Under the pieces are notes generated by a model. The model searched no databases. It was not told the origin of the DNA and was given only the letters and a program-made list of their open reading frames with translations. A DNA stretch of 64,000 nt from Anthoceros angustus (lineage: Eukaryota > Plantae > Anthocerotophyta): contig MU008197.1 in assembly GCA_010909165.1 (NCBI GenBank), forward strand, positions 434,001 through 498,000. Reading direction: 5' to 3'. Every line of letters starts with the position of its first letter. The first letter of the stretch is position 1. Positions 2,023-51,462 of this stretch are shown here, piece by piece. A program made the position numbers and the translations under genes.

Positions 2023-4788
2023 ATGCAGAAGTTTGTGGGAGGTCTTGGAACCAGGCATCCTGGTTGGGAATGGAGTTTGAGTGGGAATCCGGCTGCAAGG
2101 GAGGAGAAGGGATTGGATGAAGCTCGTAGCTTGGGGCTGAGCAGACCTGGAGTTGCTACCAGACTCCGTTGGGCAGTGTGCGATGGCGAGGAGGCTCAGG
2201 AGTTGAGGAGTATGTGCGAGCAGGGACGGGTGGAGAAGGCACTGGATGCTCTGTCCCGGATGGAGCTGCAGGGACGTGTGCCCGGGGTGCAGACTTATGG
2301 TTTTCTGTTGCAGGCTTGCAGTAGGAAGAAAAGTCTGGCTGAGGGGAGGCGGCTGCATGCCCACATCGATCGAAGTGGTGTGGAGCTGGACAGCTTTCTT
2401 GGTGAATTGGTTGTGAGCATGCTTGTGGAGTGCGGGGGTCTCCAGGAGGCTGTCTGTGTGTTCAGGAGGTTGTGGAGACGAACTGAGGTGTCGTGGACCG
2501 CTGTTATTTCGGGGTACAGTAAGGGTGGACGCGGTCTTCAGGCGCTTAGATTGTATGAGGAGATGCGAGAGGACGGTGTGGAGCCCAGCAAGTACACCTT
2601 GCTTAGCTTGCTTAAGGCCTGTGGCGGGTTAGCAGACCTCGGGCAAGGGAAGCGAATTCACGCTGAGGTTGTGAGATTCGGTTGTGGTGGCAGCTTGTTT
2701 GTGAGCACGGCTCTGGTCGACATGTATGCAAGATGTGGGAGCATGGTGGATGCGCGGCAAGTGTTTGACAAGTTGGTGCAGCGTGATGTGGTGTTGTGGA
2801 ATGTGATGATTGCCGGGTATGTCCAGCAAGACGATGGTGAAATGGCTTTGAAACTTTTCGAGCAGATGCAAGGTGAAGGTATGCAGCCAGACGAGAGGAC
2901 TATCGTTAGTGTCCTTCAAGCATGCGGATGTCTGGCAGCCTTGGAGAGACAGACACTGTGTGATGGACGACTGGTCAAGGCTTGCTCCCTTCGAAGGGTG
3001 AGGAGTATACATTCTCACAAGCTTGGAAGCAGCTACAAACGGAATGCCTTTTTGGCAAGTACTCTAATTCATGTGTATGCAGCATGTGGAAGCATGGAGG
3101 AGGCACAAAATGTTTTTGAATCCTTGTCCCACAGGGAAGTGGTCTCTTGGACAGCACTGATTTCAGGTTTTGTGCAGCACCAACAGGGGGAGAAGGCATT
3201 GCAGCTTTATGCCCAAATGGAAAAGGAAGGAGTTATGCCAAACAACCGCACCTTTGTCAGTCTTCTCAGTGCATGTGCAAACCTTGCAGGCTCTGACAAT
3301 GGCCTACTCATAGATGGGCATTCTGTCAAGGCCGAAACTCTGCAGAAGGGGAAGCTCTTGCACTCGGAAGCTGTTAGAAGGAGTTTTGAACAGGATACGT
3401 TTGTTGCCAACACCCTGATTGACATGTATTGTAAATGTGGGAGCCTTGTTGATGCTCGCAAGGTTTTTGACTCACTGGCTCTACGCACAGTCGTCTCTTG
3501 GAATGTCATGATGGCTGGGTATGCGGAGCAAAATAATGCTGAGGAGGTTCTGCAACTTTATGACCAAATGCAGGCTGGGTCTGGTGTGAAACCAAATGAC
3601 AGGACCTACGTCAGTGTGCTGAAGTCCTGTGACGCCTTGGCAGCTGAGGAGACGGGAATAGCTCTGAATGGGCAAATCGTTAAAGTGCTTTCCCTCCAGA
3701 AGGTCAGGGCCGTACATGTGGATGTTATCCGAAATCAATTTGCATCCAATAGTTTTGTAGCTAATACTCTCATTCAGGTGTACTCCATGTGTGGGAGCAT
3801 TGAGGATGCTCGTCTTGTGTTTGACACTTTGTCCGAGCCCGAGGTGGTGTCGTGGAGTGCAATGATCACAGCTTATGCTCATCAAGAACAGGGTGGCATG
3901 GCTTTGGAGCTGTATCACAAAATGCAGGACTCCGGCATACCACCTAATGAACCTACGTTTCTCTCAGTTTTAAAGGCGTGCAGCAATTCTGGAGCCCTGG
4001 ATATGTGCAAGCAGATCCATGAGCACATCACAATGCATGGGTTTGATTGGAGTATCAGAGTAGCCAACAGTCTTCTTCATGCATACGGCAAATGCGGGAG
4101 CATGGTGGATGCAAGGCGTTTGTTCAACTCTTTGCCCGAGCCTGATGTGGTGTCATGGAGCACGTTAGTCGCTGGATATGCTCGACAAGGAAACTGTGAC
4201 ATGAGCTTCAACTGTTTCGAAGAGATGCAGCAGGCAGGCGTACAGCCCAATGCAGTGACATTTCTGTCGCTGCTCTCAGCCTGTAGTCATGCTGGCTTGG
4301 TGGACCAAGGCCTGAAGTACTTCGAGTCCATGAGAAAGGACTATGACATTCCTGTAGGAACCGAGCACTACGTTAGCATGGTCGACCTCCTTGGGCGTGC
4401 AGGTTTCGTCAGGGAGGCATATGACCTGATTTGCAATATGCCAGTGCCACCCGACCACAGAGTGTGGCTGTCGTTGCTTGGGGCCTGCCGGAAACATGTG
4501 AATGTACAAATTGGAAGGCGTGCCTTTGAGTGTGCAGTTCGTCTGGACCCCAGGCATGGTGCAGCGTATGTTCTAATGGCCAACATTTATGCTCATCTTC
4601 ACATGTTAGACGAGGAACAGGAGGTCGAAAGCGTTAGAGTCAGGGCCGGGGCCTGGAAGAAGGCAGCCCAATGCTGGATAGAACATGGAAAACAAGTGCA
4701 CACGTTTGTCGTGAATACCAGCGCCCATCAACAGAGCATAGAGGTATACACCAAATTACGACAACTGAATGCACAATTGCAGTGGTAG
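2023..4788 (+). CDS. PLS-class pentatricopeptide repeat protein with E/E+ extension and no DYW domain (organellar RNA-editing factor type)
   Basis: Intronless 921-aa ORF. Repeated P-L-S motifs (VSWTAVISGY, LVDMYARCGSMVDARQVFD), E1 (EHYVSMVDLLGRAG), E2 (AAYVLMANIYA) and a PG-box-like WKKAAQCWIEHGKQVHTFVV. It stops before any HxE/CxxC deaminase motif. The start Met is uncertain. Confidence 0.95.
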   Translation: MQKFVGGLGTRHPGWEWSLSGNPAAREEKGLDEARSLGLSRPGVATRLRWAVCDGEEAQELRSMCEQGRVEKALDALSRMELQGRVPGVQTYGFLLQACSRKKSLAEGRRLHAHIDRSGVELDSFLGELVVSMLVECGGLQEAVCVFRRLWRRTEVSWTAVISGYSKGGRGLQALRLYEEMREDGVEPSKYTLLSLLKACGGLADLGQGKRIHAEVVRFGCGGSLFVSTALVDMYARCGSMVDARQVFDKLVQRDVVLWNVMIAGYVQQDDGEMALKLFEQMQGEGMQPDERTIVSVLQACGCLAALERQTLCDGRLVKACSLRRVRSIHSHKLGSSYKRNAFLASTLIHVYAACGSMEEAQNVFESLSHREVVSWTALISGFVQHQQGEKALQLYAQMEKEGVMPNNRTFVSLLSACANLAGSDNGLLIDGHSVKAETLQKGKLLHSEAVRRSFEQDTFVANTLIDMYCKCGSLVDARKVFDSLALRTVVSWNVMMAGYAEQNNAEEVLQLYDQMQAGSGVKPNDRTYVSVLKSCDALAAEETGIALNGQIVKVLSLQKVRAVHVDVIRNQFASNSFVANTLIQVYSMCGSIEDARLVFDTLSEPEVVSWSAMITAYAHQEQGGMALELYHKMQDSGIPPNEPTFLSVLKACSNSGALDMCKQIHEHITMHGFDWSIRVANSLLHAYGKCGSMVDARRLFNSLPEPDVVSWSTLVAGYARQGNCDMSFNCFEEMQQAGVQPNAVTFLSLLSACSHAGLVDQGLKYFESMRKDYDIPVGTEHYVSMVDLLGRAGFVREAYDLICNMPVPPDHRVWLSLLGACRKHVNVQIGRRAFECAVRLDPRHGAAYVLMANIYAHLHMLDEEQEVESVRVRAGAWKKAAQCWIEHGKQVHTFVVNTSAHQQSIEVYTKLRQLNAQLQW

Positions 4789-21070: not shown

Positions 21071-23566
21071 CTAGCTTCTGCAACCCCAACCATCAGAGGT
21101 ATCCTGGGACGGGTCCAGATGCGGGACATAGGATCCTGCTTTGTTCATTGAGGAAAGAAGTTGTCGAAGCCTGATATATATGTCGCCACTCTCTGGGTGC
21201 TTCTTATCTCCAACCAAAAAACTATGCACCACACCATCCGTGTCTGTCCACCAGCTCTGGCCTGGTTGCTTCCATGCTCGGGTTCCTGTTCTCCTCACCT
21301 GCATCTCGTGTGCCTGCTTCCACATCTGGGCACCAGTGTATATATTCGACATCAACACATATGCAGCAGCATCTTTCGTGTCTAGCTTCATTGCTTCATC
21401 AAAGGCATGGCATCCCAACTCCACATTGTTCCACTTTTGACAAGCACCCAACAGAGTGTGCCAAACTGCAGCATTAGGCAGTACAGGCATTGCCCTTACC
21501 AGAGCTAGTGATTCATCTAGTCTGCCTGCCCGACCCAGGAGATCCACCATGCATGCATAGTGCTCCACAGTTGGGGTGATGCCATATTGTCTGCTCATAG
21601 CCTCAAAGTACTCTTGCCCCTTGTGCACTAGACCCGCATGGCTGCAGACTGTTAATACGCTAAGCAGCGTGGTGGCGGCCGGCTGAATGCCAGCCTGTAT
21701 CATTCGGTGATACAAATCAAAGACCACTTCACTGGCTCCCTGACGGGTGTAGCCTGCAATCAGAGCACTCCAGGTGACAACATCTCTTTCAGGCATGGCA
21801 TCAAACACATGTTGTGCATCAGCCATGCTCCCTGACTTTGCATACATGTTTATCAAACTGTTGCCTATAGTCCCATCGAGTTGAAGGCCTGCATCTTCAA
21901 TCTGCGCATGAAGCTGCCTGCCCACGTGCAAGGCTGCCACACTTGCACAGGCCTGCAGGAGGCACCCAAATGTCACAGCATCAAGTGGAACCATGCCTTC
22001 TCCTCCCATTGCCTTGTAGAGATTCAGGGCTTCCTGACCCATGCCCTGCTGGGAATAGCCTGCTATCAGAGCAGTCCATGTCACAACATCTTTCTGAGGA
22101 AGTCTGTTAAACACTGCCCGAGCATCCTTGACGCTGCCGCACTTTGCATACATGTTTACCAGAGCGCCACCTGCAAACACGTCAGCTTGAAGTCCTTGTT
22201 CTCTGATTTGTGCATGAAGCTGCTTGCCCGTCTCCAAAGCTGGGGTGCCCACAGTTGCACAAGACTGCAGGAGGCACACAAATGTGACTGCATTGGGTAC
22301 AATCATGCCGCCTTTTTGCATGGCCGTGTAAAGATGAAGGGCTTCCAGCCCCATGCCCTGCTGCGAATATCCTGCTATCATTGCACTCCATGTCACCACA
22401 TTTTTCTGACCGAGTTCGTCAAATACACCCCGAGCATCCTCCAAGCTGCCGCACTTCGCATACATGTTCACCAAGCTGCTGGCTACAAACACATCAGCTA
22501 AAAGATGTCCTTGTTCTCTGATCTGTGCATGAAGCTGCCTCCCCTTCTCCAGAGCTGCAGTGCCCACACTTGCACATGCCTGCAGGAGGCACGTAAATGT
22601 CACGGCATCAAGTGCAACAATGCCTTCTTCTTGCATAGCCTCGTGAAGACGAAGAGCTTCCTTCCCCCTGCCCTGCTGGGAATATCCTGCTATCATAGCA
22701 TTCCAAGTCACCACATCCTTTCGAGGAAGGCCGTGAAACACTCTCTGAGCGTCTTCCAAGCTGCCACACTTTGCATACATGTCCACCAAGCAGCTGGAGA
22801 CAAACAAACTAGGCTCCACCCCACTGGCCAACACATCAGCATGGACCTGTTGCCCAGTATCCAAGTCTGCTCCCCTAGCACAAGCCTGAAGGGCTGCCAC
22901 AAACACATGGCCATCCGGCTTCACACCTGACCTGCGCATCCGATGGTACAGTTGTATGGCCTGCTTATCTTGCCCCTGCTTAACATTAGCAGAAATTATG
23001 GCAGACCACGAGAAGGCGTCAGGTGTGGCAACCATCTCGAACACATCCATGGCGTCTTGCAACCTGCCATGGCCAGCATATAGTCTCATGATGTGGTTGC
23101 ACAAGAACGTGTCCGACTCACAACCCACTTTCACAGCGAGAGCATGCACACGACGACCAAGAATCAAATCCCTCTGAACCACACATTTCTTCAGCACTGT
23201 GTAAAAGAGAGACTGAGAGGTTGGACAGTCCGTCTCCACCAAAAGTCCCAGAGCCTCAACAACAGCCTCCCTCACCTGCCCCTGCTGACATAGCCTGCTC
23301 ACGGTTTCAGCCGTCACGCCCCTTGACCACGCTGCCGACCTGCCAGGATCATCCGGCACGCCCCAGTGGGATGCGGTAGGGGCACCAGCCTGACCCATCA
23401 TCTGCACCTCCACCTTCTGGGACGAACGGGAGCTCTTTTCCTGTCGCGCATCCGGACAATCTCTTGGAGAGCCTGAGATGCCTCCCTTGTTGGCTAACGG
23501 TCCGAGACCAGCGCCAATGGTGTCCACACCCATCTGCGTTGCCACAGGAAACATCAAGCTCAGCAC
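21071..23566 (-). CDS. PLS-class PPR protein with E/E+ extension (WW-type PG box) and no complete DYW domain
   Basis: Intronless 831-aa ORF with P-L-S repeats (DVVTWNAMIAGYSQQG; SLVNMYAKCGSLEDAR), E1 EHYACMVDLLGRAG, E2 AAYVLMSNIY, then WKQPGQSWWTDTDGVVHSFLVGDKKHPES...YVPH and a stop. The start could be 23566, ~23530 or 23401. Confidence 0.95.
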   Translation of the reverse strand: MLSLMFPVATQMGVDTIGAGLGPLANKGGISGSPRDCPDARQEKSSRSSQKVEVQMMGQAGAPTASHWGVPDDPGRSAAWSRGVTAETVSRLCQQGQVREAVVEALGLLVETDCPTSQSLFYTVLKKCVVQRDLILGRRVHALAVKVGCESDTFLCNHIMRLYAGHGRLQDAMDVFEMVATPDAFSWSAIISANVKQGQDKQAIQLYHRMRRSGVKPDGHVFVAALQACARGADLDTGQQVHADVLASGVEPSLFVSSCLVDMYAKCGSLEDAQRVFHGLPRKDVVTWNAMIAGYSQQGRGKEALRLHEAMQEEGIVALDAVTFTCLLQACASVGTAALEKGRQLHAQIREQGHLLADVFVASSLVNMYAKCGSLEDARGVFDELGQKNVVTWSAMIAGYSQQGMGLEALHLYTAMQKGGMIVPNAVTFVCLLQSCATVGTPALETGKQLHAQIREQGLQADVFAGGALVNMYAKCGSVKDARAVFNRLPQKDVVTWTALIAGYSQQGMGQEALNLYKAMGGEGMVPLDAVTFGCLLQACASVAALHVGRQLHAQIEDAGLQLDGTIGNSLINMYAKSGSMADAQHVFDAMPERDVVTWSALIAGYTRQGASEVVFDLYHRMIQAGIQPAATTLLSVLTVCSHAGLVHKGQEYFEAMSRQYGITPTVEHYACMVDLLGRAGRLDESLALVRAMPVLPNAAVWHTLLGACQKWNNVELGCHAFDEAMKLDTKDAAAYVLMSNIYTGAQMWKQAHEMQVRRTGTRAWKQPGQSWWTDTDGVVHSFLVGDKKHPESGDIYIRLRQLLSSMNKAGSYVPHLDPSQDTSDGWGCRS

Positions 23567-23848
23567 CAGGCGTTAAGCACGCATCTCTAGTCAGCGGACA
23601 GGCCATTGGGGAGACGGACGTTCCAGGACTGTTTCATCGGCAGTTCTCAATGCCCATTGTAGGAGAAGTTATGGGGACTGCAACCTCCGCGGTACACTTC
23701 GAGAAATCCTGTGAGAGAGGCCATGAGACGTGTGCTGCTGGACACAGTCCATGCATTTCAGCGGTAGAAAAAAATGAGGAATGCACATGTGGCGCGTGGA
23801 AGCGCTGAATGGTCCCAAAGCTTTTCTTGCCACCATCCGTGAGCTCAT

Positions 23849-25308
23849 CTACTCTTCTGATGGGGGGGCATCATCTTCTACTTCTACTTCTGCGTCTACT
23901 CCTACAGCCCACCAAAAGCTGACTGAAAAGCTGACGCTGAGCGACCTTACGTAGTGCCACCACTTGGGGGGCACGTACAACAAATCACCAGGCTCCAAAA
24001 TGCAGTCCACGAAGGGCAGATCCTTGGCAGCGCTGAACTTGTCGTAGTCCGGGTTATCAAGGTCCACCTGGAGACAAGGCACGGCAGTCACCCCGAATGT
24101 TACATTCCCATCACGGGCAGGGCCAGGGCAGGGTAGGGCAGGCAGATCGACCGACAACTACCTGACTTGAATTCTGAAGCATCGGCTCTTCGTACGGGTA
24201 GAGCTCGCCGGATATCTTGGACGGATACAGCCTCACGTACTTCCTCCCCACAACCTGCCAACCCCTAATCCGTCCTTCACATTTCTCCCAAGACACACGC
24301 AGACACACAGTGAGGCGTGAAGCTGGGTTACCTGGGCAAGGAGATTGTGCACAGGGTCATGGTGCAAGGGGGTGACGGTGCCGCTGGGGCCGAACCACGC
24401 ATTGATAGACTGCAGGCTGCCACCGCCCAGGCTGCAGTAGTCCGGAATTATGATATCCTTGCGGAGCTCCGGGATCTGCCAAACCCCAAACACACGACAC
24501 CATCACCATCCGGCCAGCATCTGCAGGCAGAGATGAGGCAGTGTTGCACCAACCTGGTCGAAAAGAGGATGCTGTGCAAGATAGGCACGTTCCAGGCAAC
24601 CAGACGGTGCCCGCTCCCAGTAGGCAACGAGGTCGGACACGGTCATGAGCTGCTGCTTCCATCCCTGGGCCAGGTAATGCTGGCCCACCTCGACGGGCAC
24701 CGTCCGGCTGCCCGCAACCTGGCGGATGTAGTCCAGGTGGTGCCACTTGGCCATGGCCGGCCAGTGGGCGATGGCATCCCGGATGACGAGCGGCTCCCCG
24801 GGCACGAGATGGCGGCACAGGAATCCCTCCAAGGACGGCAGCCGCTCCACCGGGACGCCATGTCCCGGCCCCTGCATCGACCCATGCGGGAGGGGGAGGC
24901 CTGCCGACGGCGCCTGCAAGGGCCAGCGGGCAGCTTCCGACGATCCTGGTGCTGGCGGGTCTCGAGCGTGGGAAGAAGCGATGGCGGCGTGGAGGTGGCG
25001 GCGGAGGCGGGGCCCGCCCATGATGAGGCCGAGGTCCAGGCACCGGAGCGCATCGGCATCGGCATCGGCATCGGCATCGGCCGCATCGCGGAGGCAGGCG
25101 GCCAGGAGGAGGCAGGAAAGCGAGAACGCGTCTCGCCAGAGCGGGCCACCGACGTCCACGCCCCGCGTGCAGCTGCTCCCAGGCCATGTCGTAGGCCTGG
25201 TGGCGGCGGCCACGTCGCCCGCCGCCGCCGCCAGGGCGGCTTCCGCGAAGGCGCCGCCCCGGCCTTGCGCGCCTCCTCCAGCACCTCGGCCCGCTCCTCC
25301 TGCTCCAT
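23849..25308 (-). CDS. JMJ30: JmjC-domain protein JMJ30/JMJD5 (exon 1 needs about 4 single-base corrections)
   Basis: Exons 25308-24554, 24476-24332, 24254-24162, 24067-23849. Motifs: [10 protein letters not shown]...[63 protein letters not shown]. The N-terminal motifs are spread over three frames, with shifts at G/C runs. Confidence 0.93.
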
Positions 25309-25321
25309 TCGCTTTGAGAGA

Positions 25322-26533
25322 ATGGGGACGGCAGACTCATCCGGCGCGGCGCGGTGGGTCGAGCTGCCCCGGCGCCCGCCGCCAGCGCCGCCAGGCAGGC
25401 CACCACGGCGCTGCGGTGGGTGGCCTGGTGCTGCCCCGGCCTGCCGCGGCCCCGCCTGCACCGCCTCTTCCGCCGCCGGGAAGTGCGCATGCGGGCTTCG
25501 CAGCAGGAGCAGGGCGGCCGCGGAGGGTGGGAGAGGCGGCGCTGTTGCCGCCAGGCGCCGTGCTGTGCGTGCCCGCCTCCTGGCCCTGGCCTGGCGGCGC
25601 CGCCTTCCTCATCCCGGCACCCGGCGGCGGGGAGCGGCGGCGGCGCGCGATATGGCGGCGCGCGAGATGGCGGCGCGGGTGCTGTACAGGGACGCGGCCG
25701 TGGTGGTCGTGGACAAGCCGCGGGGCGTGGCGGTGCAGGGCAGGACGGGCGTGGCGCGGAGCCTGGACGACGGCGTCATGGCCAGGCGATGGCGTCGCTC
25801 GGGGATCCAGACGGAGACGGAGACGCCCAGCCTCCGCGCCTGGTGCACCGGCTCGACAAGGACACCACGGGCGTGCTGCTTCTGGGAAGGACGCGGGACG
25901 GCGCCGCCTTGCTGCACTCGCTGTTCCGGGACAAGGGCGGGGAGCGTGGAGCGGCGGTACTGGGCGCTGGTGCTGGGCGAGCCGAGGGAGCGGGAGGGCA
26001 GGATCTCGGCGCCTCTGGCCAGGCTGGTGCTAGACGGCGGCGCTTCCGATCGGATCGTGGTGCGGGAAGTGGAGTCGGATGGGCCGGTCGTGGCCAAGAG
26101 CGCGGTCACGGAGTACAGGGTTCTGGGGCCTTCCTTGCTGGGCTGCACCTGGCTGGAGCTGCGGCCTCTCACGGGCAGGAAGCACCAGCTGCGGGTGCAC
26201 TGCGCGCAGGTGCTGGGCGCGCCCGTCGTCGGGGACTACCGATACGGCTGGAGGGCGCACAGGGAGTGGCCGTGGGAGCGGCTGCGGGAGGCCCAGGACA
26301 TGTCCAGGGAGCACGGGGACCTCCTCTCGGCCCAGCCCTGGCTGCACTTGCATTGCCGCGAGACCGCCATTCCCGACGTCGCTGCCCTGCTCCGTGGAGT
26401 GGACATGTCTCAGGCGGAGGTGTTGAGGTTTGTGGCGCCCTTGCCTCCGCACATGCAGGCAACCTGGAATTTCACTCTGCCAAATGGATTGTCCCGGATC
26501 AAGAGTACTCGTCGTGCTCAGGAGGCAGCCTAG
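25322..26533 (+). CDS. RluA-family RNA pseudouridine synthase (organellar RPUSD type; intronless; about 4 single-base corrections needed)
   Basis: Motifs ARWVELP, TTALRWVAWCCPGLPRPRLHRLFRRREVR, VLYRDAAVVVVDKPRGVAVQG, LVHRLDKDTTG (catalytic Asp), RRYWALVLG, LTGRKHQLRVHCA, LHLHC, APLPPHM. They are distributed over the ORF-track frames 24317-26533 and 25354-26601. Confidence 0.92.
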   Translation: MGTADSSGAARWVELPRRPPPAPPGRPPRRCGGWPGAAPACRGPACTASSAAGKCACGLRSRSRAAAEGGRGGAVAARRRAVRARLLALAWRRRLPHPGTRRRGAAAARDMAAREMAARVLYRDAAVVVVDKPRGVAVQGRTGVARSLDDGVMARRWRRSGIQTETETPSLRAWCTGSTRTPRACCFWEGRGTAPPCCTRCSGTRAGSVERRYWALVLGEPREREGRISAPLARLVLDGGASDRIVVREVESDGPVVAKSAVTEYRVLGPSLLGCTWLELRPLTGRKHQLRVHCAQVLGAPVVGDYRYGWRAHREWPWERLREAQDMSREHGDLLSAQPWLHLHCRETAIPDVAALLRGVDMSQAEVLRFVAPLPPHMQATWNFTLPNGLSRIKSTRRAQEAA

Positions 26534-26626
26534 GCCGGCTCATGAAAAGTACAATAAGGTGTATGGAAGGACGAACAAGTTTCAGATCCAAGTCCAGGTA
26601 GCCGTCACATAAGTCTGAGGAGGAAC

Positions 26627-29530
26627 TCAGCCACACTGCTTCTTGAACGTTAGACATTCCTCCGCCACGAAGTCACTGTGCAGGGCAGACAGTTACCCCA
26701 AGTCAAAAGGCAACCCAGGGGACAACGTCGGCGAAGTTCCACCCAAAGACAAGCTGCTGCTGCTTACTAGATGCGCTGTGCCATTTGATTCACATCCCAT
26801 CGTGGACTCCAGGGGTAATCAGTGTAAAGCCTGGAACTAAGAGGCTTGCCTCCTCTGGGATCAAAATGCTGCAAAAGACAGCACCGGTACCGCATCACGT
26901 GAGCTCAGGACTTCTGTTCCTATTGCCAGCTACAGAGTCCACGACACAACAGTACCTGAGAGCTCTGGAAAGTGAGAGCCGGCTGCTGCTTCGGAAAGTT
27001 GATTGGCAACGCCAGGTGAACCTGCATCAGTGGGACACTTGGGTCAGAGCACGCATTTTCCTCCAGATGCATGCTCTGTCGAAAAAAGGAAAAGCGTGAG
27101 GTTTCGAGAGCGGGGCACGACACGCACCAGGAATGAGAAGTTGCCTGATGACGCCAGCACTGTCACCCTCCGAAAGAGTGCCTGCGTAACAGTTGGAAAA
27201 ACAACAGTCAGATAACAACCCACTGACGTCAGACGAGCAACAATTAACAGGATTATTGGGTGTTCAAGAAGCGAGCAACGACCGTTTCTGCTTCAAGAGG
27301 TCGGCCGAAGTATAGAGCCAAAGCTTCTATGAAGTGTCTCCGCAGATTGACTGAATCGAAAGCCTCTTGTACCTGAAGAAAGAGGCCACAAACATCATCT
27401 ATCTACCTGCAAAGCATGTAACTTGTTCGCAGCAGCAAACAAAATATGACACACACCTGTAGCTTCAACAACTCTTGTACGTGAGGAAAATACTCCATCA
27501 AACAGCTGCCAGAGGAAGAAGGGTAAGAGGTGAAGTGCACTGTTTTACTGGTTTGAATGTCGGGCACAGATAGCCAACTTACGTGCGGTCAGGCCAGCCC
27601 GGAAGTTTCACATCGTCCACGTCGAATACCTCTTTCAACTCAATGGGCGCAATAAGTCTTAGTTGCGGGGGAGCAGCTCCTCCGTGGAGTGCATACCTGG
27701 CCTGTCACCAAAACATACACCCTATTCCGTTACCCGCATTGGTAGAGAAAGTTGGGCGACAGTTAGGGTTACAAGCAATACTGCAGGTTACAGTTCCTAA
27801 AGCCAAGGAACCGAAAGGCCGTCTTTAAATCCACCCGACGGACCGGGTTAGCAAGATACGGTGCCGCATATGGCTCCAGGGTGGAGATGGCATTGAGGAG
27901 AACCAATTCCTCCTTGCACAATCCGGACACTACTAGGCGTTGAAAGCAAGATATCCAAGAAAACCGACTTTCGCTCAGACAGTGGCACTGAAGAATCACG
28001 ACTCACTTACTTGCAACGATATCATAAGATCAGGGATTGTCCCAAACAGGCGAGGAAATCGCCGCATGTCAACGTTCAGCACTGGAAAGGAAATCAGAAC
28101 TTCGTCGGCCTGCGATCAAATCCAGAGCAAAATAACGTCCCTACGCATTGTTTGGAAAGTGTAATGAAAAGACTGGAGACAGAGCCTAGTGGCGTCAAAC
28201 TACCTTGTCAGATCCAGATACCAACCGCATCTCCAGGCCCTGTGGAGATATACAGCCATCGCACCAACAAGACACACATCATCCAACTCGGCTGCAACAG
28301 GCTTTGAGTGGCAGAACATGGAAGAGTAACTGTGAAGTCAGAAAAAATAAGAGTACAACTGTGAATGTGCTACGCCAATGCAATCTCTGTCTGCAAGCTG
28401 TGACAAATTCTCCAGAGGACCCAAGAGGCACGGGGGAGGGAGGTGGGGGCAAGTTGAGGCACACACACGCAGCTGACTCACCTCTGTGAAAGCCATTGTG
28501 CTGATCTCAAAACGGACTTGAGGATCCTCCACAGCCTCCACTCGTGACCGTTGATACTTCAGATATAAGCTTCTGCATGATTGGGACCACAATGCATAAG
28601 ATACGGGCTTCACAAGCTACATCACCACAAGCTCTGCAATTCACACACACCTGAGCTCCAAGATAAGGCGCAGCAGACGTGAGGGATCCGACACATTCCA
28701 ATCGCGTAGGATGGACCATGCACCCTTGGGAATACCAGACTCATCATCAGTCGGAGCTAGGGGCTGAAATTCTTCATCATCTGGCCCAAAAATGAAATCT
28801 GGGGGAAGCGACGGGTACTCCAGGTTGTACAAAACCTCCCCTGGAGAGGCAGGCCACTAGGGTTACACAATAGCGGAAATGCCTAACAGCTTCAGCAGGC
28901 TATCGGTCTCATCCAGCCAACTTACACCTCAGCAGCTCTAGGCAACAGGGTACAAAGACAGCCAGACGGTCTGTAGCTCGAGATTTTGCAGAGCCATCCC
29001 GAGTTTGCTCGATCTGCCATTTTCAGAGCCATAATAATACATGAGCTGTGAGGAAGACGACTGCCAACGGACCATGCCCGCATTGCACAAACCAGTCGGA
29101 CAGAAAGTGCTTCCTAATTAGCAGAAGAAACCAGCCCTAGCCAAGGGCGGGAGCCACAAACGACAGAACGGAGCAATTGCATCCACTCCAACATGCCACA
29201 ATTGAGCTAAGGCATCAAGCTGCAGCATGCCACCCTACAGGGAAGGATTAACGCGAAAACCAAGGCGAAGGATCCACATCTCAAGATTTGCACACGTAAC
29301 TCCACCCCCGCGGCCGAGAAGGCCACCGAGGCTTGCCTACGCGTACACATCCCGGCAACGGCAACACGCGGCATTCCTGACCAGGAACAGGGGAAAGAAG
29401 AGAAAGCGGAAGCGGCGGAGGAGGAGGAGGCTCCGGGGCCGGAGGATACCTTTATCGGAAGAGGAGATCTTGTCAGGGCATAGTCTAGTTGAGCAAGGAT
29501 CGGGTGGCGCTGCGCGGCGGCAGCGGCCAT
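26627..29530 (-). CDS. BRE: BRISC and BRCA1-A complex member 2 (BRE/BRCC45), about 12 exons
   Basis: Exons include 29530-29450, 29013-28926, 28840-28651 (WEVLYNLEYPSLPPDFIFGPDDEEFQP) and 28572-28482. Later exons encode LRRHFIEALALYFGRPLEAET, VHLALPINFPKQQPALTFQSSQ, YTDYPWSPRWD and YDFVAEECLTFKKQCG-stop (TGA at 26629-26627). Confidence 0.92.
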
Positions 29531-29562
29531 GGTTCAGGTTCCGGGACGATGCCGCCTCGTTT

Positions 29563-30085
29563 ATGACGCGCCAGTGGCTCCGAGTGAAGGAGCACAGGCC
29601 TCCCGCTTCTCTGGCGCTGGTGGTGGTCTTCCTGGGGTTTTTCTTCCTGGTGATGGTATGGAGCTGGTGGACGGGTCCTCCTATCCCGGCCGGCCTCTTC
29701 CTGCGTCGACACCGCAAGCGCCTCGACAAGCTCCGCAAGAGGATCCGCGACACGCTCTTGCAAGGGATGATCAACCGCATCCGCGGCTTCCGTCGCTCCA
29801 GGTGCTTCAATTTTTCCACCACCATAATTCAGCGCCCTTTCCGATTTTTTTTCACCCCTGCAGCATGCTGCATTCCAATTTCTTCTGCAAATTCCAATCC
29901 GATATTTTGCACTATCTCTTATGCCTTGTTGGGTGTGTGGCATAGTTATGCGTTTTCACTCAAAAAGACCCGTTTTTTATTTCAGGGATCTTGGTGGCTC
30001 CCGAGATCCGCCCTTGGATTTAGACATGGGTTACGACGAAGACGAGGACCTTGATATGGAGATAGACGAACATGGGCTGAGCTGA
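29563..30085 (+). CDS. Candidate orphan 112-aa single-pass membrane protein (2 exons)
   Basis: Exon 29563-29801, GT..AG intron 29802-29985 with a T-rich acceptor, exon 29986-30085. The phases join correctly: MTRQWLRVKEHRPPASLALVVVFLGFFFLVMVWSWWTGPPIPAGLFLRRHRKRLDKLRKRIRDTLLQGMINRIRGFRRSRDLGGSRDPPLDLDMGYDEDEDLDMEIDEHGLS. Codons are GC3-rich. No family recognised. Confidence 0.5.
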
Positions 30086-46609: not shown

Positions 46610-49600
46610 TCACTCAGCCATCGCCTCACCCTCAACTCCGTGGTCTGTCTCCATTGGTTCAGATGTGTGCGAGTCCCCGCCATTTGCAGCACCTTGCGAA
46701 TCCTTGGGTTCTGAAGGCTTCTGCTCCGCTGCTGGCGCAGGAGCAGGTTTCGGAGGGGGAGGCCGAGATTTTGTCATTATTGGCTTACAAAACCTGTCAA
46801 CAAAAAAGGTGTCATTAGCATCAACCTGCTCTCCAGCCAGCAGTCTTATCATTCTGTAGTGTGGGGGAGAATCTGAGGGCTCACGGATGCGGATCATTGC
46901 CCGTACAGAAAGCCAACTCAGCCCTGGACGCCCTAGATTCAAGAACAGCCCCTTACCTGTCCAACACTTCTGTTTTCTTCTTTATCTCAGACGTCAGTAG
47001 CACAGGGTTGGCAGCCCTGGGAAGACTTTCCTGCTGAATTCTCTTGTCCCTCAGCCATTCTTCGGCCTTAATGGACTCAGCCACCACCTTCAACACACAG
47101 CCGGATTAATTAGCTCACTGTGCATCAACTCCGCTATTAGTTACCCTAGTCTGAGGATCAATTAAGAGAATAAAGAACAGGTGCCCACCTTCTCCTTTTC
47201 GGCTGCATCAATGTGATCATACTTGGGATCTTTAGACAAGGCAGCTTCCCTGAAGCTATTGATGCAGTATTGAAGCTCAAGAAGGGCTGGACCCCGGAGT
47301 TCTTCCTCTCTTTGCCTCTCCTCAATTGGATCCCCAAGCTGTGCGGAAGCTTTCAGTCAGAACGCAGCCAAAAACAAAGTTAGGTTCCACTACTGGACCC
47401 TCGGGCAAGTCCTTTACACATACCTTCTTCAATTCAGCCAACTTTGCAGTGTAGACACTCTTTGTCTCATCCTCCCCTTCTTCATATAACCAGTCCTCAG
47501 TATGCTGCAACTTGTTGGATAACTCCTCTCTCTCAGAGTCAGTAACATATGGTGCAAGCTTTGCATAGAGCTGCAATGGCCAAGGCCAGCAGGTTAGCCG
47601 CACTTTAGTTGCACCAATACTGGCCACGCATTCAGCATAGTGCATATGGTACAGCAAGACCAGCGTTCAGAGAACCACAAAGGCAACCATCAGCTATGTG
47701 AGGGACTCATTACAGAGAAAAAGGACAAACCTTGTTTCGCATGTCATACACATACGCTTCAACTGCGTTTTTCCTATCCTTCGTCTCTTCCATCACCCGG
47801 TCTTGGAGAGCCATTTCATACTCCTTCTCAACCGCCTTCGTCAGCTCAGTCTGGGGTAACCCTCCAGGGATGACTTCGTGCACAGGAACTTCTGTGCGCT
47901 TTACTTTCTTCTTCTTCACAAGCTCTGGCTGCTCAGAGCACAAAGCAACATGCCACGATTATCAGATTGATGTCGAGCACACTACAATCGAAATTCAAGC
48001 AACAGGTTGCATCCAGTACCTTCACACTGTCTGTATCCATCTTCACAGGCTTCTCAGTCACTGGGACCCCATTTGCAGCCGTATCTGGAGTGGCCTGTGT
48101 AGGATTCTCAGCATCATCCATTTTCGATTCAGGAAACTCGGGCTTCCCAGCATCTTTATCAGTCTCCATGGGGGAAGAATCTTTGGCATCTTGTGCATTC
48201 TCCTTCTTAACAGGGACCTCAACCTCCTCTTCTTCCACCATCTGAGCACATTCAACAAACCATCATTGGCTACGTGACAGTCCCCTCCTCTGGATTTTGC
48301 ATGACCATCACTTGCTTTTGAGATACTTACGGTTGCTGATTCCACATTGAGGATTCCATGGAGATTGAGACGAATCTTGACTTTGATCTTGGCTTTCTCT
48401 GCCTTTGTTGATGTGAATGGACCAATCTGAAAGTCACACATTCCAAAGCCATTAACAAATACTACCAATGAGCTTCGCTTCTCACACTTCCTGGCAGACC
48501 CTTCAATGGCAGTTCCTTCATAATTGCAAACACAAGCAGGGAGCAACCAAATTGTAGGGAGGCGTACAAACTACAAGCAACTGTTCTAAGTAACATACAA
48601 GCTACAGACAACTGTTTTGTGTTAATAAAGGGACAATCCGAGCTATGCACCAGTACGCATACAGTATCCATCCGACAAAATCAGTCCATCAAAAAACACA
48701 AATTATGGCAGACGAAGCTGAACTTACTGTGAAAGTTGCAATCTTGGGAGATGTGCCAGCAGGCAATTCCGTAGAGTCAGCATAAAAAGAATCTACCGAA
48801 AAAGTCCCAGCTCTGTAAAATGTCAGCATTTTCGTGCTGGGAACGGGGTTGCCCTTCACAAACACGATGCTATTTGGATGCGCTTCTTCCCCTCCTTCGG
48901 AATCTGGAGCTGGTCCTTTCCAAGACAGTGCAATAGGGAAGGGGAAGGAGTCTTGAACCTAAGACATAAGACAACAAAAATGGAGTCAGGACAGGAGGAC
49001 CGGGAGGCGGCAAGTCCCAAATAGCGGCAAATCAGGCGGCGGGAAGTACCTCAAATTCTCGGACTCTGAAAGTCGGACTAAGCATGGCACACTGCAGAGT
49101 ACATCCCCGGGCAATGCACTCACTAGCATTCAACGTTCTGCCACCCTCCCTACCGAAAACTGCCGTCAAAATTTTCAAAATGGCCGGCACTCGGGAGCCC
49201 GACCCTACAACTTCCACAGCGCTGATCTTGTCAGCGGTTAGGTTGGCATCTTCCAGAGCTTTCTCACAGGGACCACGGACACGCTCCAGAATGGGAGCGG
49301 CCAAAATCTCAAACTCCTCTCTCTTGATGGAAGACCTGACGTCCTTCTCATCCATCAAGCACTCGATATTGAGAGGCGCCTCCGAATTGGCACTGAGGAC
49401 TTTCTTGAGCTTCTCACAGCCAGCTCTCAACCTGAGACTAGCTCTGGCGTTAGACACCACATCAATCTTGTACTCATCTTTAAACTTCTCAGCGAAGTGG
49501 GCAAAGAGGACCTCGTCGAAGTCCCTCCCACCCAAGTTCCGGTCAAAAGTGTGGGACAGAATTTTGAGCTGGCCCTTCTTAAACGCCGCAATGCAAACCT

Positions 49601-50219
49601 GCATGCTGGCATGCCCAACATCCACAAACGCAACATTGATGGGCTCGGAGTCGGACAGGTCCGTCTTGTAGATCCCATAGGCCAGTGCGGTCGCAGTGGT
49701 CTCATGCATGAGCCGCAGCGGATGCAAACCCGCAATCTGAGCCGCATCCAGATACGCACGCCGCTGCAGCTCGGTGAAGTAAACCGGAATACCAATAACG
49801 CAATCCAGCACGGCCGTCCCCAGGTTCTTCTCCGCGATGGACTTCAGATTGGACAGCACCATCCCGAGCAGCTGCGTGGGAGTGAAGCTCTTGTGCTCCC
49901 CCAGGTACTGCACGTTGATGGAGATACCGCCATCAGGACCCTCCGTGACATTAAACGGGAACAGCTTCAGATCCCGCTGCACATCCGGATCCTGGAATTT
50001 CTTGCCGATGAAGCGCTTGATCTGCGAGATGGTGTTCTTCGGGTTCATGGTGATGGAAGCCGAGGCGGCCGTGCCAAGAAAGCGCTGTTTGTCCCCGAAC
50101 GACACCATGGCCGGGGTCTCCCGCTTGGACTCGTCATTGAGCACCACGTCGATGCCCCGCTGCCTGGCGACTCCCACAATGGCGTTCTCATTGCCAACAT
50201 CCAAGCCTACCACACTCAT
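46610..50219 (-). CDS. HSP70-14: Cytosolic Hsp110-type chaperone (HSP70-14/15), 9 exons
   Basis: Exon 1 is 50219-49050 (MSVVGLDVGNENAIVGVARQRGIDVVLNDESKRETPA). Later exons encode VQDSFPFPIALSW, KVKIRLNLHG, EYEMALQDRVMEETKDRKNAVEAYVYDMRNK, EDWLYEEGEDETK and FCKPIMTK...EPMETD; stop at 46610. Confidence 0.97.
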
Positions 50220-50688
50220 GTTGGCAGCTCCCTAAGTCCTAAGCCTCGGATCCTGGTCCCCAGGGGCAGCCTGGGGCGGCAATTGACGGCCCCGGTGCGC
50301 TACCTCCTAACAGCAGCACCTGGAGAGCGAGTCCCCGAGCCCGATCTTGCCCTGCCTTGCTGCCTTGCTGCCTTGCTGCTCTCCGTTCTGCGACCTGACG
50401 CCACTACCGGAGACGCAGCTGACCCAGGGCTGCGGCAGAGAAGACGTGGGAGAAGAATACCGCCGCTGCGATCGCGATTACGCCTCCTCACAACGTGGGT
50501 TCCTCAAAGGGCAGCGCAGCGCGCTGTGGAGCGAGCGAGTGCGATGGCGCAAACGGCTGCTGCAGCCACTTCGCCTTGCCTTGTCTTGTGTCGCCTTTGC
50601 CCTATTTGCATTCTCCCTCCTCTCTCCTCTCTCTGGGATGCCAATGTAAGTAGCATGAGCATGTCATGGGTCATGGTATGGCGCGCCT

Positions 50689-50703
50689 GGAACGCTCTAG
50701 AAG
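50689..50703. promoter_or_regulatory. Imperfect heat-shock element upstream of the Hsp110 gene
   Basis: gGAAcgCTCtaGAAg fits nGAAnnTTCnnGAAn with one mismatch. It lies ~470 nt upstream of the ATG, just beyond the CT-rich probable leader. Confidence 0.3.
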
Positions 50704-51462
50704 GAACCCCCAAGGTGGCGCGCGTTGGACCCAGCGACCCAGCGACCTGGACCCTGGATTAAGTTAACGGCTAGTTTGTGGGCGCTTGAGGCTGTGCCAC
50801 TTGGGGACACGTACTGCAGCTTGCTTCCCCTAAACTTTGTTCGTTTTAGGGCCTGGTTTAGCTATTGAATAAAATCGATGGACGAAATTGGATCTCGTCC
50901 ATCAATCACCATTCGAGACCAGAAGGGCAGGAACAAGCTTCCACCGTCGAAATAAAGTTTCTGTTGGTATTCACGTTAATCTAGCTCTGCACGCCTAATG
51001 TCGTCGATGTGGGAATATGTAGACGTGGCTTCAGGAGGGCTACCTACGAAACGGAATATGCTTAGATCTGGATAGTTCCATACCCCTGTCCATTCTAGAC
51101 CACCAATGAAATATGCAGGGACCTCCAAACATATGAGGCGTGCGGCCCTCACCCCACATAAGGATGCCACAGGCCCAACTTCCGAGGCAGATCACCGTGA
51201 GCGACTTCAGCTAGCTGGAGGTAGTCAGTCAAGCAACTTCTCGTCCGCATTCACTTGCGCAGGAGTCCGCACTTAGGACCAGCGGTGAGAACATGCACAA
51301 CGGGAGCAGGCACGGCACGTGACGGACATCGCACACAGCGGGTCTCCCTATGTGATCCGCTCGATGGTTGAAGGTCTGGAGAGTTCCTAGTTCTCTGCTC
51401 CCAGAACAAGAACAGACCAGACCAGGCACCTGGTTGAGTTCTGATTTGCTCGGATGTCACCA

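Follow-up and report, generated by a model that had tools for sequence, protein, structure and literature searches.

Within the window, that is, the whole 64-kb stretch of the Anthoceros angustus assembly analysed here, the coding sequences of two genes on opposite strands, a JMJ30/KDM8-type gene and an RluA-family pseudouridine synthase gene, begin 13 nt apart. The reading that we prefer, and consider probable from the sequence, is that the two form a functional divergent pair whose coding regions abut within a shared, bidirectional, CpG-island-like promoter, with the RluA gene starting at position 25322 and the breaks in both reading frames being omissions of the assembly. Apart from the spacing and the presequence of the synthase, both genes are ordinary.

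Read directly from the assembly, CAT at 25306-25308 represents the start codon of the JMJ30 gene on the minus strand (ATG position 25308), and the plus-strand ATG of the RluA gene occupies 25322-25324, with A at -3 and G at +4. Between these opposite-strand start codons lies only tcgctttgagaga (25309..25321, no strand), 13 nt with a local GC content of ~50% inside an island of 75-90% GC, which confirms the distance given in the earlier note. The two genes face each other with their 5' ends, and their coding starts are too near for separate leaders. The first conserved residues are encountered 8 codons from the JMJ30 ATG and 10 codons from the RluA ATG, and <70 nt separate the conserved coding sequence of one strand from that of the other. 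Both starts therefore cannot lie well downstream, an outcome that the earlier note had raised against its own proposal. As assembled, the sequence leaves no room for a separate promoter and two ordinary leaders, so the transcripts would be either short-leadered or overlapping head-to-head. To this extent the core logic of the earlier argument, from the lack of an intergenic promoter to nearly leaderless or overlapping mRNAs, stands on the assembled sequence, whereas its stronger form, 170 nt of dual coding, does not. The neighbourhood as a whole is very compact, with CDS-to-CDS gaps of ~294, 13 and 233 nt, and hornwort genomes are reported to be unusually gene-dense (PMC8075897). Inspection of the junction for repeats and palindromes yielded only GCC-type low complexity; a CCATTC...GAATGG symmetry about both ATGs was set aside as too short to have meaning.

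Exon 1 of the JMJ30/KDM8-like gene (24554..25308, minus strand; PF24472, PF13621) was delimited by frameshift-aware alignment to 4 homologues, ends at a GT donor after ...FDQ and encodes the N-terminal ARM repeats together with the beginning of the cupin/JmjC domain. Exons 2-4 (24475-24332, 24254-24162 and 24067-23852, with the stop codon at 23851-23849, all minus strand) were placed using tblastn, Pfam Cupin_8/JmjC matches and splice sites, and the introns, of 78, 77 and 94 nt, are all GT-AG. Pfam recognised PF13621 (Cupin_8) on three exon pieces (E 1.5e-6 to 4e-15), as well as PF08007 and PF02373, and the KDM8-type N-terminal ARM repeats matched PF24472 (ARM_KDM8_N, E 4.6e-13) in an alignment that extends to the MEQEE start. 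The HxD...H residues are found in the exon translations as TPLHHDP and WWHYV, which we take, from knowledge of the family, to be the Fe(II) triad. Counted from ATG 25308, AWEQLH falls at residue 43, compared with 41-62 in land-plant homologues, bearing out the earlier view that this start is supported by homology. In domain content, catalytic residues and N-terminal length, the gene is alike to Arabidopsis JMJ30/JMJD5 (KDM8 family). On the same strand, an upstream ATG (25338..25340, minus) precedes the main one by 32 nt in a different frame, which suggests either that the JMJ30 leader is no longer than 31 nt or that scanning is leaky.

The plus-strand gene (25322..26533), apparently a single exon, encodes an RluA-family pseudouridine synthase of the plant RPUS3/4 type, as judged from its PseudoU_synth_2 domain (PF00849, E 7e-14) and its homologues; the best named matches are plant 'RNA pseudouridine synthase 3/4, mitochondrial', with which it shares domain content and catalytic residues. 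The catalytic motif LVHRLDKDTTG is encoded at 25840-25872. Adding one C to the CCCC run at 25367..25370 (plus strand) restores the RluA frame and the conserved RWVELPPAP motif and, just as the earlier note had it, brings the minus-strand ATG at 25490 in frame with JMJ30. With this single fix, the RWxELPP motif and an S4-like TALRWV...LFRxRxVR segment are both present, the Pfam S4 model giving no match on the gene. Once corrected, the RluA frame contains a TAG (25192..25194, plus strand) upstream of ATG 25322 and no ATG between the two, ATG 25322 being the first of the frame after this stop. The TAG is the antisense of Ala-Tyr codons of JMJ30 and, with the JMJ30 frame fixed, lies 43 codons upstream of the start. 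Because single bases are mis-assembled here, the ATG-to-ATG register and this upstream stop depend on the inferred corrections.

What the synthase gene lacks is an organelle presequence of ~30-90 residues before the RW motif. The xWxxLPP motif begins at residue 11 from ATG 25322, compared with residues 33-92 (median 57) in 64 homologues, so that ATG 25322, although the first in frame, is not supported by homology as a full N-terminus, contrary to the earlier note. The 10 residues ahead of RWxELPP are fewer than in any of the 64, all of which have an N-terminal region of 32-91 residues at this place (75 in the closest relative, P0025, of 494 aa), and the usual presequence is thus missing. A comparison of the sequence upstream of ATG 25322 with homologue presequences returned only low-complexity Ala/Pro matches, which we rejected as evidence. 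The synthase may have lost its organelle presequence, or may gain one by unusual means.

The 5' coding regions of both genes are interrupted by frame breaks, at least nine of them between 25145 and 25945, all behaving as missing single bases. JMJ30 exon 1 requires four single-base fixes, near 25269, 25198, 25160 and 25146, and the RluA gene ~5-6 between 25368 and 25945, but none after 25961; the single frame error reported earlier, at the CCCC run, is thus present but far from alone. The breaks lie at or near G/C runs and are confined to sequence with a GC content of ~77% or more, and none was found in 2.5 kb of PPR coding sequence (53% GC), in JMJ30 exons 2-4 or in RluA 25961-26533. Given this confinement of single-base losses to the most GC-rich sequence, they are probably assembly errors, not gene decay. 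The database searches were run with uncorrected, separate pieces, and the corrected readings were made by script with N/X at the breaks; the corrected translations are free of stops and retain HRLDKDTTG, HHD...H and GRKHQLR, and both genes look functional. For annotation, this serves as a warning that GC-rich first exons of the assembly probably lack ~1 base per 50-100 nt.

The junction resides in a CpG-island-like 5' region shared by both genes (24900..26100, no strand), with 75% GC and a CpG o/e of 1.01 over 1.2 kb, compared with 0.42-0.63 in the flanking genes and spacers; a GC-rich region undepleted in CpG thus spans the two divergent 5' ends. Inside the island, GC falls to 50% exactly at the junction, and pyrimidines make up 68% of the 60 nt preceding the RluA ATG, compared with 46% over the island. 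In the mechanism that we propose, two unrelated housekeeping genes stand head-to-head in a compact land-plant nuclear genome, and the island is a TATA-less, probably unmethylated region that would serve both as a bidirectional promoter, each transcript beginning at the edge of, or within, the partner's first exon. The leaders could be very short, at most 31 nt for JMJ30 if the upstream ATG at 25340 is to be avoided and up to 133 nt without an AUG in the case of RluA; alternatively, the mRNAs could overlap in antisense at their 5' ends, and the genes would then be a divergent cis-natural-antisense pair. On the other strand, the GAG codons of the Glu-rich JMJ30 N-terminus read as a pyrimidine-rich tract that immediately precedes the RluA ATG. 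The weakest point of this explanation is that RluA would most likely be translated from ATG 25322 and hence be made without the extended N-terminal presequence found in related proteins.

That shortfall, an N-terminus 22-81 residues short of every homologue, might mean that the assembly dropped a stretch at the junction and with it the true intergenic promoter, the leaders of both genes and the codons of the RluA presequence, in which case the 13-nt spacing would be an artefact. The presence of at least nine single-base omissions in ~800 nt of the island points the same way, but every detectable error is a 1-nt event and none a block deletion; moreover, an in-frame ATG in good context precedes the conserved motif by 10 codons, and the drop in GC at the junction resembles that of a true boundary between genes, so that we regard such a gap as unlikely. 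We assign a similarly low probability to an RluA start further upstream, at a near-cognate codon among the 43 open codons or in a spliced exon, which would place the presequence antisense to JMJ30 exon 1 and create a true coding overlap. Arabidopsis offers known cases of non-AUG starts that supply an organellar presequence, all homologues have 32-91 residues before the motif, and the 43 codons, with abundant Ala, Ser, Arg and Pro and no acidic residue until the final Glu, are presequence-like. However, the antisense of any GC-rich coding sequence has this same composition, the 43 codons contain no ATG and resemble homologue presequences only in their low complexity, and JMJ30 introns of 77-94 nt leave no free space for an upstream exon. 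Very unlikely, in our view, is a non-working partner, in which RluA would either be untranscribed or have arrived next to the JMJ30 promoter as a retrocopy or pseudogene, without introns and truncated at its 5' end. Its single exon among multi-intron neighbours, its missing presequence and its several frame breaks would fit such a copy, but the breaks resemble those of JMJ30 exon 1 in type and density and end where GC falls, no stops remain after correction, catalytic and structural motifs are intact, and the closest relative is a protein of 494 aa. We rejected the pseudogene reading as the main explanation, since in both genes the breaks follow GC content and no stops are left.

The earlier note had also proposed a ~170-nt overlap coding on both strands, in which JMJ30 would be translated from the minus-strand ATG at 25488..25490 (MRTSRRRKRR...) and carry a 61-residue, Arg-rich, NLS-like extension antisense to RluA codons 1-56. 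With the extra C in place, no stop indeed interrupts the frame between ATG 25490 and MEQEE, and AUG 25490 would be the first met by ribosomes on a long JMJ30 leader. Nevertheless, we consider this proposal highly improbable. Third codon positions in this frame coincide with those of RluA, and 94% of codon-order shuffles likewise leave at least 61 codons open, a distant in-frame ATG occurring in 26%; an open minus-strand frame reaching ATG 25490 is thus expected by chance from composition. No JMJ30 homologue compared carries such an extension, land-plant homologues beginning within a few residues of MEQEE, and the claim is not supported. In addition, the other strand of the stretch encodes the conserved S4-like segment of RluA (TALRWV...LFRRREVR), and the out-of-frame AUG at 25340 intervenes.

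The preferred arrangement, a divergent pair abutting in a shared promoter, is an extreme form of a known kind, namely, a divergent cis-NAT with a bidirectional CpG-island-like promoter. It had been put forward as the best candidate for an undescribed system, a description that does not survive comparison with head-to-head overlapping coding pairs already on record: 192 divergent cis-NAT pairs have been identified among TAIR10 genes of Arabidopsis (PMC4463847), and human INO80E-HIRIP3 is a head-to-head overlapping coding pair (PMC11890862). Opposite strands, meeting or overlapping 5' ends, housekeeping-type genes and a GC- and CpG-rich shared region are common to these pairs and ours. In contrast to them, the ATGs here are 13 nt apart, an ordinary leader would enter the partner's coding sequence and not only its 5' UTR, and the transcript overlap is predicted from sequence rather than observed. 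Bidirectional promoters, that is, divergent pairs with TSSs <1 kb apart, have been surveyed in rice, maize and Arabidopsis (PMC4997330, PMC4035068). Those of plants and animals resemble the JMJ30/RluA junction in their divergent orientation, very short distance, TATA-less GC-rich sequence and CpG o/e of ~1 against depleted flanks, but the JMJ30/RluA pair is essentially without non-coding promoter DNA, and promoter function would have to be carried by both first exons. Should accurate reads bear out the spacing and both genes prove to be expressed, the pair would be a natural test case for a plant core promoter located inside coding sequence, and would show how two mRNAs can be transcribed and translated without disturbing each other when their leaders are minimal or mutually antisense.

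A more general proposition, which we advance only tentatively and think rather unlikely, is that abutting or overlapping starts of divergent housekeeping genes recur in the hornwort lineage, with core promoters routinely placed in the partner's first coding exon and with 5' sense-antisense overlap or near-leaderless translation as the normal state. In the window there is one candidate second pair (29528..29801, both strands), 4 kb away, from which the earlier note had suggested a genome-wide architecture; here, CCATGG at 29527-29532 contains a minus-strand ATG at 29530, belonging to a putative BRE/BABAM2 exon 1, and a plus-strand ATG at 29529. BRE is real downstream of the putative exon 1, for which we detected no homology and no Pfam or PDB support; the plus-strand ORF (29563-29799), a predicted small membrane-like protein, has no relatives in a word search or in Atlas, and neither ATG shows start homology. 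Pfam scans of 20 long ORFs in the window recovered only PPR, WD40 and HSP70 genes and no further head-to-head pair. Word searches for homologues of JMJ30 and RluA gave no protein of the species itself and nothing above ~50% overall identity, and a metagenome scan produced no close relative, the best match having 43% identity and most being microbial or angiosperm transcript contigs. The homologues of the two genes in the moss Ceratodon (locus tags M758_2G082700 and M758_9G087700) are on different chromosomes, implying that the JMJ30/RluA adjacency is not ancient.

The antisense register that shares third codon positions accounts not only for the open frame from ATG 25490 but also for a 738-aa plus-strand ORF at 24317-26533. 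The same register, with similarly long open frames, characterises the spurious antisense ORFs of GC-rich genes typified by Pfam PF10712 ('NAD-GH'), the antisense of HSP70. Unlike in those artefacts, the JMJ30 and RluA genes themselves are real, and only their apparent upstream extensions are artefactual. Long antisense ORFs in the GC-rich first exons of this assembly are, as such, meaningless. An antisense-of-HSP70 ORF of the PF10712 type also lies within the window, at 49497-50759.

The minus-strand JMJ30/KDM8-like gene (hereafter JMJ30) and the plus-strand RluA-family pseudouridine synthase gene (RluA) lie head-to-head, and the junction, read directly on the plus strand, is ctgctcCAT tcgctttgagaga ATGgggacg. 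The JMJ30 ATG (25308-25306, minus) and the RluA ATG (25322-25324, plus) are thus separated by a 13-nt spacer (25309-25321), exactly as the earlier note had proposed, and the further claim that an intergenic promoter is absent also holds for the sequence as assembled, which leaves insufficient space for a promoter and two ordinary leaders. Conserved coding sequence begins on the two strands less than 70 nt apart (E8 of JMJ30 at ~25285 and R11 of RluA at 25352), which rules out true starts far downstream in both genes. The observation is largely confirmed, and its interpretation only partly supported.

Both ATGs had been presented as supported by homology, which applies to JMJ30 but not fully to RluA. 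Alignment with homologues using tblastn places JMJ30 in four minus-strand exons (25308-24554, 24475-24332, 24254-24162 and 24067-23852) followed by a stop codon at 23851-23849, with introns of 78, 77 and 94 nt that are all canonical GT-AG. Its exon pieces match the KDM8 N-terminal ARM repeats and the Cupin_8/JmjC domain in Pfam, so that the predicted product is a JMJ30/KDM8-type JmjC protein. The alignment with the homologue P0001 reaches the initial MEQEE, the conserved AWEQLH motif of the corrected protein begins at residue 43 (41-62 in land-plant homologues), and, because conserved residues begin about 8 codons past ATG 25308, the JMJ30 start is either this codon or one upstream. A GCATCG hexanucleotide microsatellite in exon 1 (25050-25085) encodes an Asp-Ala repeat run in the N-terminal ARM region, without counterpart in homologues.

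The RluA coding sequence, apparently a single exon at 25322-26533 (plus) in homologue alignments, matches PF00849 (Pfam), and, among relatives that bear a name, the best are 'RNA pseudouridine synthase 3/4, mitochondrial' proteins of plants. Adding a single C in the CCCC run at 25367-25370 restores the motif RWVELPPAP, which 64 of the examined homologues carry. In the corrected sequence, the RluA frame contains a TAG at 25192-25194, 43 codons upstream of ATG 25322, and no ATG in between, making ATG 25322, which has a good context (A at -3, G at +4), the first possible RluA AUG on contiguous DNA. However, residue 11 is already the first of the motif here, whereas none of the 64 homologues has it before residue 33 (range 33-92, median 57) and the closest relative, P0025, has 75 residues ahead of it; the usual N-terminal presequence feature is absent. 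Thus, ATG 25322 is the first AUG, yet a complete N-terminus is not supported by homology, and the RluA start is still the main weak point of the paired-start reading. This presequence aside, both genes are ordinary members of their families. The RluA coding sequence also contains a tandem 15-nt duplication (25639-25668, GGCGGCGCGCGATAT / GGCGGCGCGCGAGAT) encoding ARDMA-AREMA immediately ahead of the conserved VLYRD segment.

Frameshift-aware protein-to-DNA alignment with four homologues per gene mapped four frame breaks in JMJ30 exon 1 (near 25269, 25198, 25160 and 25146) and five to six in RluA (the CCCC run at 25367-25370, ~25507-25520, 25581-25624, 25780 and 25936-25945). Each acts as one base absent from the assembly, most lie at or beside G/C runs, and all are confined to regions with a GC content of ~77% or more; none was found in the 2.5-kb PPR ORF (53% GC), JMJ30 exons 2-4 (57%) or RluA 25961-26533 (68%). 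Corrected readings were made in script with N/X at each break, and database searches used separate exon and frame pieces. With N at the breaks, both translations are stop-free, and the corrected proteins retain HRLDKDTTG and GRKHQLR (RluA) and HHD...H (JMJ30). Given these open translations, preserved motifs and GC-bound missing bases, the breaks read as probable systematic errors of the assembly where the DNA is very rich in GC, rather than gene decay. A 738-aa open plus-strand ORF (24317-26533), antisense across all of JMJ30 exon 1 and running into RluA, is a product of GC richness and frame errors; after correction of the JMJ30 frame it is ended by the TAG at 25192.

The added C does bring the minus-strand ATG at 25490 into the JMJ30 frame, which is open for 101 codons upstream, but the coding overlap that the earlier note derived from it does not follow. 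The third codon positions of this frame coincide with those of RluA, and an open frame is expected from composition: in 94% of trials with shuffled RluA codon order, the antisense frame had at least 61 open codons, and in 26% it also contained a distant in-frame ATG. No land-plant JMJ30 homologue compared has an N-terminal extension upstream of the JMJ30 start, and the DNA of the putative extension encodes the conserved RluA segment TALRWV...LFRRREVR. Dual coding is thus highly improbable. Elsewhere in the window, an antisense ORF of 421 aa (49497-50759, plus) over an HSP70 gene (49035-50219, minus) matches Pfam PF10712 'NAD-GH', a family suspected to be a spurious antisense artefact, illustrating that long open antisense frames here are misleading.

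A 1.2-kb island (24900-26100) with 75% GC and a CpG o/e of 1.01 covers the pair, compared with a CpG o/e of 0.42-0.63 in flanking genes and spacers (0.42 in the PPR gene body, 0.56-0.63 in neighbouring sequence). By its composition, the island is the signature of a putative unmethylated CpG-island-like region across the shared 5' ends, and the contrast suggests that CpG sites beyond promoter islands are heavily methylated. GC content falls to ~50% precisely at the junction. Back from ATG 25322 as far as 25186, the plus strand has a single ATG, a two-codon uORF at 25186, such that RluA could have a leader of as much as 133 nt without any AUG; the minus strand carries an out-of-frame ATG at 25340, 32 nt ahead of the JMJ30 ATG, which speaks for a leader of at most 31 nt on the JMJ30 mRNA, or for leaky scanning. 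Pyrimidines make up 68% of the 60 nt ahead of the RluA ATG (46% in the island), because the Glu-rich JMJ30 start, with its GAG codons, reads CTC on the opposite strand; the tract is reminiscent of the pyrimidine patches known from TATA-less promoters and leaders in plants. Most likely, a putative bidirectional promoter is embedded in both first exons and would yield mRNAs that have short leaders or overlap in antisense at their 5' ends.

Three other explanations bear on this arrangement, each of them unlikely. The assembly, which lacks single bases at so many sites nearby, might also have dropped a spacer between the genes; the breaks mapped are of one base each. Initiation of RluA upstream or at a non-AUG codon would accommodate the short N-terminus, and the in-frame TAG leaves 43 codons for it. 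RluA could also be a truncated retrocopy, consistent with its apparent single exon and absent presequence; its corrected frame is open and keeps the family motifs. Compared with these, the embedded bidirectional promoter is the preferred reading.

The best matches of both genes come from mosses, Selaginella and Logan assemblies, which, together with the PLS-class PPR genes (E/E+ motifs) in the window, indicates a non-seed land plant. By their locus tags, the Ceratodon homologues are on chromosomes 2 and 9, hence the adjacency is not ancient, and a metagenome scan found no close relative. Head-to-head overlapping pairs (divergent cis-NATs) are known, with 192 among TAIR10 genes of Arabidopsis (PMC4463847); INO80E/HIRIP3 in human has been analysed mechanistically (PMC11890862), and surveys of bidirectional promoters exist for rice and maize (PMC4997330, PMC4035068). 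JMJ30-RluA belongs to the same class, but its start codons nearly touch, making it an extreme case within a known class, in an error-ridden assembly, and no new kind of system.

A second such pair, ~4 kb away, is a candidate. CCATGG at 29527-29532 provides an ATG on each strand, and a BRE/BABAM2-like minus-strand gene is real further downstream (Pfam matches at 28644-28832 and 26923-27123), but its putative first exon has no support from Pfam or PDB. The plus-strand partner, a small membrane-like ORF of two exons and ~111 aa read from the sequence (29563-30085, from ATG 29563), has one hydrophobic segment and is apparently spliced to a short acidic DEDEDLDMEIDE tail; a word search and the Atlas detected no relatives, and the ORF could represent an orphan gene or no gene at all. 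The second pair is therefore unverified, and a recurrent abutting-start architecture in the genome, proposed in the earlier note, is possible, though one window is too little to judge it by.

The Anthoceros genome paper describes hornwort genomes as unusually gene-dense (PMC8075897), and the pair sits in a very compact cluster (21071-30085) of PPR(-), JMJ30(-), RluA(+), BRE-like(-) and the small ORF(+), with successive CDS-to-CDS gaps of ~294, 13, ~233 and ~32 nt, followed by an AT-rich stretch of 3-4 kb (27-34% GC at 30-33 kb). The PPR gene of this cluster (831 aa, 21071-23566, minus) and another at 2023-4788 (921 aa, plus) are intact, intronless PLS-class genes of ~53% GC that carry E (and E+) motifs.
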